A stretch of DNA of 63,636 nucleotides, filler included, from Olpidium bornovanus S191 (Eukaryota; Fungi; Olpidiomycota): assembly GCA_017911155.1 (NCBI GenBank). It is 31 parts of 31 records of this genome, joined end to end, with 100 filler letters (N's around TTAATTAATTAA, not from the genome) between each part and the next. Parts side by side here need not be neighbours in the genome. Positions count along the whole stretch, not along the records: positions 10,511 to 11,670 come from JAEFCI010001089.1; 30 more parts are not named here. The stretch is one strand, 5' to 3'. Below, piece by piece: positions 10,411-11,670 of this stretch; position 1 is the stretch's first letter; each line of letters starts with the position of its first letter. The notes beneath the pieces were generated by a model. That model searched no databases. It was not told the origin of the DNA and saw only the letters and a program-made list of their open reading frames with translations. The position numbers were made by a program, and so were the translations under genes.

Positions 10411-11094
10411 NNNNNNNNNNNNNNNNNNNNNNNNNNNNNNNNNNNNNNNNNNNNTTAATTAATTAANNNNNNNNNNNNNNNNNNNNNNNNNNNNNNNNNN
10501 NNNNNNNNNNCATGGATTTGGGGCTACCAGTTGCGCGCCCAGTGTATCCGCGACTCAGCCTCCGCCTTTTCTCCCTTTCCCCCTTTTCTAACACGCTGTT
10601 CTGTGGTCCGGAATAACCTCTGCTAAGTTATCGGATTTGGCCTCCACCGAGCATATAACTTATCAGAAGGAATACTGTATCTCTCAAAAAGTCAGATGAT
10701 CCGGCAGAACTCCCTTGCTGTAACAGATTTTTGGACGTTAGCAAAGGAGGGGAGGGAAGGGGGAGGAAGGGATGGTGGGCCAGGCTGGTAGCGAACGGCG
10801 CGGCGGGCAACGGTTTTATTTTTCCCTTTTTGGTCAAACTTAAACTTTTAATCATTTCTTTTTCTTTTTTCATTTTGGGTTTTTTTTCTCTTTTTCTTCA
10901 GGGGTTGGGTAAAGCAGAGTGGGGAGGGAGATGACCTGCGCGTCGGCCTGGGGGACTTTAGCAGGTTTGCGTCGCGCAGGGCCAGCGGCGGAGAAGAATC
11001 GGCCCGAGTTTGTTACCGGGTAGGAACTGAGCTGGACAAAAAGGGGACGGGGAGGTCGCGTGCCCCGGAGCCGGGTTCTTTTTCCTCCGGTGCG

Positions 11095-11328
11095 TCATTT
11101 GTAGACCACCGGCTTGGAGAAGGCCGGCAGGGCGGTGCGTGTGCGAACCCGGCATGGAATGGCGGTCAGCGAGGCGCGCGCCCGGAAATGCGTGCGAGGA
11201 GCCGGAAAGGCAAATCTCTCAGGCAGATCTGCTGCGGAGCCTCGTCGCTCCGGCCCTCAAAACCCGTCACTTCCGAATGCGCAGGAACTGTCCCGCGGAT
11301 CCCCTCAGCTCCCCGAAATCCGTCACAT

Positions 11329-11361
<33 letters not shown>

Positions 11362-11670
11362 CCCATCCCCCCTCCCGCGCTTCCCCGCTTCCACCGGCGG
11401 GCTTCATCGCAAAAAAGCCGGCCGATGGTTTGCTTTCTCACCTGGTTAAATATCTTCTTATCACCGCCGTGGGGCGTGTAGTTGATGTTCTCGAGGCTGC
11501 CGACCTTCGACCGCGCTCTCTTAAAGTCCATCTTCTCGCTGAATATCTTGACGTCACCGCCCTGGCGCACGTACCCCTCGTTCCGGGAGTCCACCTTCGA
11601 CTCCGCCTGCCTGTCGAAGTCGACCGGGCGCGAGTGGATCTTGACGTCCCCGCCGCCCGGCTTGTGGCGG
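11095..11670 (-). CDS. Tau/MAP2/MAP4-like microtubule-binding repeat protein, 3' fragment
   Basis: Exon 11442-11670 encodes RHKPGGG-DVKIHSRPVDFDRQAESKVDSRNEGYVRQGG-DVKIFSEKMDFKRARSKVGSLENINYTPHGG-DKKIFNQ, followed by a GTGAG donor. A putative terminal exon at 11095-11112 reads PVVYK*. Confidence 0.85.

Follow-up and report, generated by a model that had tools for sequence, protein, structure and literature searches.

At the edge of a 1,160-bp metagenome-derived contig deposited for Olpidium bornovanus, a zoosporic fungus that infects roots, which occupies positions 10511-11670 of the window (the whole stretch of DNA analysed, 63,636 nucleotides), lies an exon that encodes microtubule-binding repeats of the tau/MAP2/MAP4 type. 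Translation of the minus strand from position 11669 yields 76 open codons that run directly into a GTGAG donor, and this exon spans 11442-11669. In order of translation, it encodes RHKPGGG, a first 31-residue repeat (DVKIHS...KVDSRNEGYVRQGG, repeat A), a second 31-residue repeat (DVKIFSEKMDFKRARSKVGSLENINYTPHGG, repeat B) and DKKIFNQ (Table 1). The reading frame is truncated upstream by the contig edge at 11670, and what remains visible is an 81-residue C-terminal fragment with at least two complete repeats and a fraction of a third, the array lying at the extreme C-terminus.

Table 1 Features of the repeat-coding gene at the edge of the contig, with positions counted along the window.
Feature	Position	Strand	Basis and remarks
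End of upstream repeat, RHKPGGG	11649..11669	-	Translation; aligns to tau KHVPGGG / KHQPGGG
Repeat A, 31 residues, degenerate	11556..11648	-	KVDS for KxGS, RQGG for PGGG
Repeat B, 31 residues, canonical	11463..11555	-	SKVGSLENI core, KVGS at 11496-11507, end TPHGG
Start of C-terminal tail, DKKIFNQ, up to donor	11442..11462	-	Translation, RNA splice
Intron, 329 nt, GT..AG, 68% G+C	11113..11441	-	RNA contigs of 8 runs
Last coding segment, PVVYK and TGA stop (11095-11097)	11095..11112	-	Spliced translation; tail motif common to chytrid proteins
3' UTR	10616..11094	-	Longest RNA contig reaches 10616; without Rfam or Pfam signal

The profile search suggested alongside the sequence-only reading gave a clear answer. 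The fragment matches PF00418 in Pfam with an E value of 3.9e-23 and 81.5 bits over three stretches, against a gathering score of 27, and the best stretch places residues 40-70, that is, repeat B, on positions 1-31 of the 31-position profile. Two traits that define the family are present: two complete 31-residue units stand in tandem above the Pfam gathering threshold, and the array is C-terminal, with the stop 12 residues past the last repeat in the RNA-supported splice form. When searched with phmmer against all PDB sequences, nearly all matches are tau chains, the best being a microtubule-bound tau construct (6CVN, 1.6e-23). The peptide aligns to tau 298-371, with the last repeat on R4 and DKKI on NKKI, and the resemblance of that repeat to tau R4 had been noticed from the DNA before any search was run. 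Chance or low-complexity resemblance to tau is ruled out by the Pfam and PDB E values, and it is confirmed that the exon encodes true tau/MAP2/MAP4-type (PF00418) repeats, whose binding to microtubules is itself a prediction from sequence. The sequence-only reading had divided the exon into the last residues of a repeat, two units of 31 residues each and the start of a pseudo-repeat; translation and Pfam uphold the first two elements, whereas the third is a 12-residue C-terminal tail and not a longer R'-like region.

The repeats differ in how well they keep the two signature motifs. In the visible fragment, the upstream one ends in KPGGG, the middle one carries KVDS and RQGG, and the last carries KVGS and PHGG, which leaves a single fully canonical KxGS and one canonical repeat out of two complete ones. 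Judged by these residues, the middle repeat, which lacks both the glycine and the proline, may be a weak microtubule binder.

The intron had been inferred from the genomic sequence, and it is real: assembled RNA contigs of 8 public runs (at least seven studies, three organism labels) join 11442 to 11112. The downstream exon starts with CCG GTG GTC TAC AAA TGA, so that the protein ends in GGDKKIFNQ-PVVYK, with the splice junction between the glutamine and the proline. The C-terminal tail after the last repeat thus amounts to 12 residues (DKKIFNQPVVYK), and the stop codon ends at position 11095, where the original reading had begun the feature. The 3' ends of several runs fall at about 10835-10888, and in one run a loose end that resembles poly(A) lies at 10855; an A-rich genomic tract adjoins this position, so internal priming is possible for that end. 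Lower-depth contigs enter the intron in two runs, with unspliced RNA or DNA as their source. At the other end, RNA contigs of 752-973 nt reach about 250 nt upstream of 11670.

Two irregularities in the RNA assemblies coincide with repetitive sequence. The intron contains a perfect (GCC)10 microsatellite at 11331-11361, where the contigs of several runs break. In one run (X8), a 57-nt low-depth contig, with 27 nt on one side, skips 70 nt of the coding exon (11502-11573), which is most likely an assembly collapse between two similar repeats and not a real splice. Elsewhere in the piece, an antisense 177-residue open reading frame and two short minus-strand frames have no Pfam match, Rfam returns only sub-threshold noise, and nothing else notable was found on either strand.

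The only identical protein among the database relatives retrieved is KAG5463135.1, a 156-residue partial 'hypothetical protein' deposited for the Olpidium bornovanus metagenome-assembled genome (MAG) from this same contig. Its gene model ignores the real donor (11442/11441), treats most of the intron as coding, with a poly-alanine run from the GCC microsatellite, and is back in frame just ahead of PVVYK. As it reads through a donor that is removed by splicing in the RNA, about half of the deposited protein is wrong. A protein search found no longer or identical further Olpidium protein (matches of 86-273 residues), and a scan of JGI metagenomes for a longer version returned only relatives at 42-48% identity.

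Many independent RNA data sets contain the transcript, and it is spliced correctly in every run examined. In a run from 2012 (X5), the transcript contig covering 10855-11670 has a depth in the thousands, compared to about 10-90 in other runs. Our guess is that this is the original Olpidium zoospore RNA library, which would hint at high expression in zoospores, although such depth is an unreliable measure of expression. Another run, X17, which bears a different organism label, contains a diverged allele or strain over 10888-11670, with three substitutions in 229 coding nucleotides (A52A, which is synonymous, plus F49L and H12Y) compared to 14 substitutions and two indels in 225 nt of the 3' UTR. 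Divergence of the coding part is thus about fivefold below that of the UTR, which points to constraint on the coding part. These data bear on whether the repeats might be a decaying remnant, or might serve something other than microtubule binding, as the absence of the KxGS glycine and the PGGG proline from repeat A and the PHGG in place of PGGG in the last repeat could suggest. We regard this as highly improbable, given transcription with correct splicing in every run, the low coding divergence of the second strain and the retention of the full SKxGSxxNI core in the last repeat.

Which organism the gene belongs to needs separate consideration. The Olpidium assembly was obtained by washing non-axenic zoospores off cucumber roots and binning the sequences on their tetranucleotide composition (PMC7865070), so a mis-binned contaminant had to be weighed. 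Because binning was based on composition, agreement in codon usage with other Olpidium genes (GC3 of the exon is 0.90) would be a circular argument, and provenance rests on motif evidence. An HMMER search of 1.84 billion representative proteins returned 757 relatives, with best non-self identities of 42-57% and none above 57% apart from KAG5463135.1. A near-identical animal contaminant, which the sequence-only reading had named as the outcome that would undo it, is therefore ruled out, as the contig's own deposited protein is the only closer match. The top single alignments are to mosquito MAP4-like proteins (57%) and to Lingula tau and a sea-urchin MAP2-like protein (about 51%), with chytrid proteins at 42-48%. 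In a maximum-likelihood tree of the last two repeats and tail (34 sequences, 81 columns), Olpidium falls on a polytomy, and approximately unbiased (AU) tests reject none of its groupings, be it with fungi (p = 0.38), with chytrids of the Spizellomycetales and Rhizophlyctidales (p = 0.46) or with animals (p = 0.41).

Sequence motifs are more informative. A tail of the form GG-x3-I-x3-P-[VIT]-[VIL]-Y-[KRV], within about 25 residues of the C-terminus, occurs in 10 of the 292 family members fetched; nine of these belong to Spizellomycetales or Rhizophlyctidales, and the tenth, a protein from a JGI metagenome, clusters with those nine. After splicing, the Olpidium tail fits this motif with identical spacing (GGDKKIFNQPVVYK compared to GGHVVIVNEPIVYK in Spizellomyces). 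The degenerate KVDxR form of the middle repeat is in turn common to the Chytridiales Dinochytrium and Chytridium lagenaria, where D/EVKIFSEK follows as well. Together, the tail and the degenerate middle repeat speak for a zoosporic fungus, at a level of resolution that does not separate Olpidium from a co-occurring chytrid. Copies of the transcript with at least 99% identity further recur in many runs, under several organism labels, and in a soil metagenome, which fits a widespread root parasite.

It is unlikely, if still worth weighing, that the binning assigned to the Olpidium MAG a contig of some other eukaryote in the zoospore preparation, be it a soil chytrid of another kind, a protist or a small animal. 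Insects do give the best identities over single aligned segments and the 81-column tree does not place the sequence, but no database protein exceeds 57% identity despite the dense sampling of animals, the tail motif is chytrid-only, the KVDxR repeat is shared with Chytridiales, and the protein stops 12 residues past the last repeat, unlike the animal members examined. For a soil chytrid, the fit of the tail to Spizellomycetales and Rhizophlyctidales, which are common in soil, has to be set against the recurrence of the same transcript across runs, labels and a soil metagenome, as a widespread root parasite would produce. The source organism is most likely Olpidium bornovanus, as deposited.

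Olpidium is one of many fungi in which the family occurs, as the sequence-only reading had guessed in allowing for unannotated database matches. Among the matches listed, PF00418 proteins are found in Chytridiomycota (Spizellomyces, Powellomyces, two Geranomyces species, Thoreauomyces, Phlyctochytrium, Rhizophlyctis, Dinochytrium and Chytridium), Glomeromycota (Cetraspora, Racocetra, Gigaspora, Paraglomus, Funneliformis, Geosiphon and Ambispora) and Mucoromycota (Helicostylum, Syncephalastrum and Pilobolus). The fungal members that we re-scanned have three to eight repeats, with E values of 1e-25 to 1e-98, and no other convincing domain. No PF00418 protein of Dikarya is among the matches listed, and the family was apparently lost there, model yeasts included. 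The Spizellomyces gene, SPPG_00495, has eight introns and is flanked by ordinary housekeeping genes on a scaffold of 2.24 Mb; this context, together with the presence of members in several phyla, indicates that the fungal family is no artefact. Proteins of the tau/MAP2/MAP4 family are intrinsically disordered, and the Atlas model of the Spizellomyces protein has a pLDDT of 0.39.

Within the 288-residue SPPG_00495, several introns lie at equivalent places of different repeats (after GSL/GSLE, and within or just past PGG), which suggests that the repeats were duplicated along with their introns. The Olpidium exon, with its 2.3 repeats, is intron-free. The tau-like proteins of Glomeromycota have a feature of their own: far beyond the repeats, at the very C-terminus, they conserve a motif (...ELT-x-AQ-x-x-YD-[ES]-SW-[IL]). 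It was noticed in six sequences, JGI or uncharacterised proteins among them, matches nothing in Pfam and is missing from those chytrid and animal C-termini that were inspected.

The multi-repeat proteins of the non-flagellated Glomeromycota and Mucoromycota bear on two proposals made from the DNA alone. The first tied the Olpidium gene to the flagellum, a link that is not supported now that phyla without flagella turn out to have kept the family. The second placed the origin of the family before the split of animals and fungi. The many fungal entries fit this, but the 81-column tree and the AU tests do not demonstrate vertical descent. We consider an origin before the split plausible, and our preferred reading makes the family ancestral to opisthokonts, retained in early-diverging fungi and apparently lost in Dikarya. 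The competing scenario, in which the fungal PF00418 genes, that of Olpidium included, derive from an ancient horizontal transfer from an animal, could draw on the striking likeness of fungal and animal repeats (45-57% identity), on a tree that leaves the kingdoms unseparated and on the matches listed, among which no unicellular holozoan or non-opisthokont member was identified. Strong similarity between fungi and animals is, however, expected of a short motif constrained by tubulin. Members are moreover spread over four fungal phyla with lineage-specific architectures and tails (PVVYK-type in chytrids, ...YDSSW[IL] in Glomeromycota), the Spizellomyces gene has eight spliceosomal introns in a native genomic context, and fungal monophyly is not rejected by the AU test (p = 0.38). 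Transfer from an animal therefore seems to us quite improbable, and we retain descent from the opisthokont ancestor as the preferred reading.

An origin older than animals is not a new idea either. UniProt names several fungal PF00418 entries 'Microtubule-associated protein', Pfam provides precomputed matches for them, and the 'fungus Rhizopus delemar' was part of the analysis of MAPT, MAP2 and MAP4 by Sundermann et al. (2016; PMC4815063), who remarked only on its distinct architecture. A 2026 review of microtubule-associated proteins covers the family through its animal members only, and our full-text literature searches yielded neither a characterisation of a fungal member nor a discussion of an origin before metazoans; nor did they return any work on microtubule binding, localisation or phosphorylation of the fungal proteins. 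The novelty claimed for the locus holds in that no characterised fungal member came up in these searches, but not against the UniProt names, the precomputed Pfam matches and the place of Rhizopus in the 2016 tree. The Olpidium gene is a fragmentary, mis-annotated addition to a fungal branch that is catalogued but unstudied.

Taken together, the evidence makes it likely that the locus is the 3' part of a gene that a zoosporic fungus, most probably O. bornovanus, expresses and splices, and that codes for a small microtubule-associated protein of the tau/MAP2/MAP4 family. The behaviour of this family is established from cryo-EM of tau on microtubules and from the phosphorylation of KxGS by MARK, and fungi have MARK/PAR-1 orthologues of the Kin1/Kin2 type. 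By analogy, each repeat would follow the outer surface of the protofilament and span tubulin interfaces, anchored by its S-K-x-G-S segment, and tandem repeats would staple successive tubulins and in this way promote microtubules or stabilise them. A MARK/PAR-1-type kinase would then release the protein by phosphorylating the serine of KxGS, a switch that could be conserved given the Kin1/Kin2-type orthologues of fungi. Since relatives were kept by the non-flagellated Glomeromycota and Mucoromycota, the likely substrate would be cytoplasmic microtubules and not the axoneme specifically, for instance the microtubule roots of zoospores or the microtubules of long coenocytic cells. More tentatively, and as a possibility we would not yet favour, the short, repeat-only proteins of Olpidium and chytrids could represent the ancestral opisthokont form of tau/MAP2/MAP4, abundant in zoospores, where they would stabilise cytoplasmic microtubule arrays and be switched off by the fungal MARK/PAR-1 through KxGS. 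If so, the tau-microtubule-MARK module would have arisen before animals and neurons did, and a transformable chytrid could serve to dissect it.

Descriptions of tau, MAP2 and MAP4 usually present them as animal proteins, and research on neurodegeneration has tau at its centre. The good conservation and the expression of such repeats in Olpidium, with relatives in chytrids, Glomeromycota and Mucorales, implies that the repeat is an old opisthokont invention and offers a simple, non-neuronal setting in which to ask for the original role of the repeat and of its KxGS switch. The Olpidium locus itself is of limited value for this, being an 81-residue C-terminal fragment on a 1.2-kb contig from a group whose fungal members are already in Pfam and UniProt, with one in a published phylogeny; the obvious system, and a better starting point, is the complete orthologue in the transformable Spizellomyces punctatus.

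Among known systems, one of the closest is vertebrate tau (MAPT), from R3-R4 to the start of R'. The two share the 31-residue period, the V-x-I/V...S-K-x-G-S-L-D/E-N-I...P-x-G-G core, the KKI past the last repeat and the C-terminal position of the repeats, with phmmer E values of 1e-18 to 1e-23 and identities of about 40-45% overall and about 60% over R4. Unlike vertebrate tau, the Olpidium protein has neither an R' pseudorepeat nor a long C-terminal tail, as it stops 12 residues past the last repeat, and it has one degenerate repeat (KVDS, RQGG) and PHGG for PGGG. Invertebrate tau/MAP4-like proteins, whose characterised examples are PTL-1 of C. elegans and Drosophila tau, reach the highest raw identity (51-57% over 75-81 residues for mosquito MAP4-like, Lingula tau and Lytechinus MAP2-like proteins) and share the GGDKKIF junction, whereas they are much larger, with long N-terminal projection domains, longer C-terminal tails and no tail of the chytrid type.

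The fungal members differ among themselves in what they share with Olpidium. Those of Glomeromycota and Mucoromycota (Cetraspora, Paraglomus and Geosiphon; Syncephalastrum and Helicostylum; Rhizopus delemar, PMC4815063) are alike in having four to eight repeats and no other Pfam domain, but come from non-flagellated fungi and have long C-terminal extensions; the end motif of the Glomeromycota is absent from Olpidium. Those of Chytridiales (Dinochytrium kinnereticum and Chytridium lagenaria; 47.5% identity over 80 residues) have the same degenerate penultimate repeat, with KVD-x-R for KxGS-L followed by D/EVKIFSEK, whereas they add a KLTFK-type segment past the last repeat and a longer tail without the PVVYK end. 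In the remaining chytrids, Spizellomyces punctatus (SPPG_00495, XP_016612831.1), Rhizophlyctis rosea, Powellomyces and Geranomyces, the proteins are small (266-393 residues in complete examples), consist almost entirely of repeats and are 42-47% identical to Olpidium over the last two. Their tails are 3-12 residues longer than that of Olpidium. The intron of Spizellomyces is placed 8 nt further upstream than that of Olpidium and in another phase, and we accordingly dropped a shared intron position as evidence. What these chytrids and Olpidium do have in common is an intron a few codons from the tail and the tail itself, GG-x3-I-x3-P-[VI]-V-Y-K, equally spaced and near the C-terminus.
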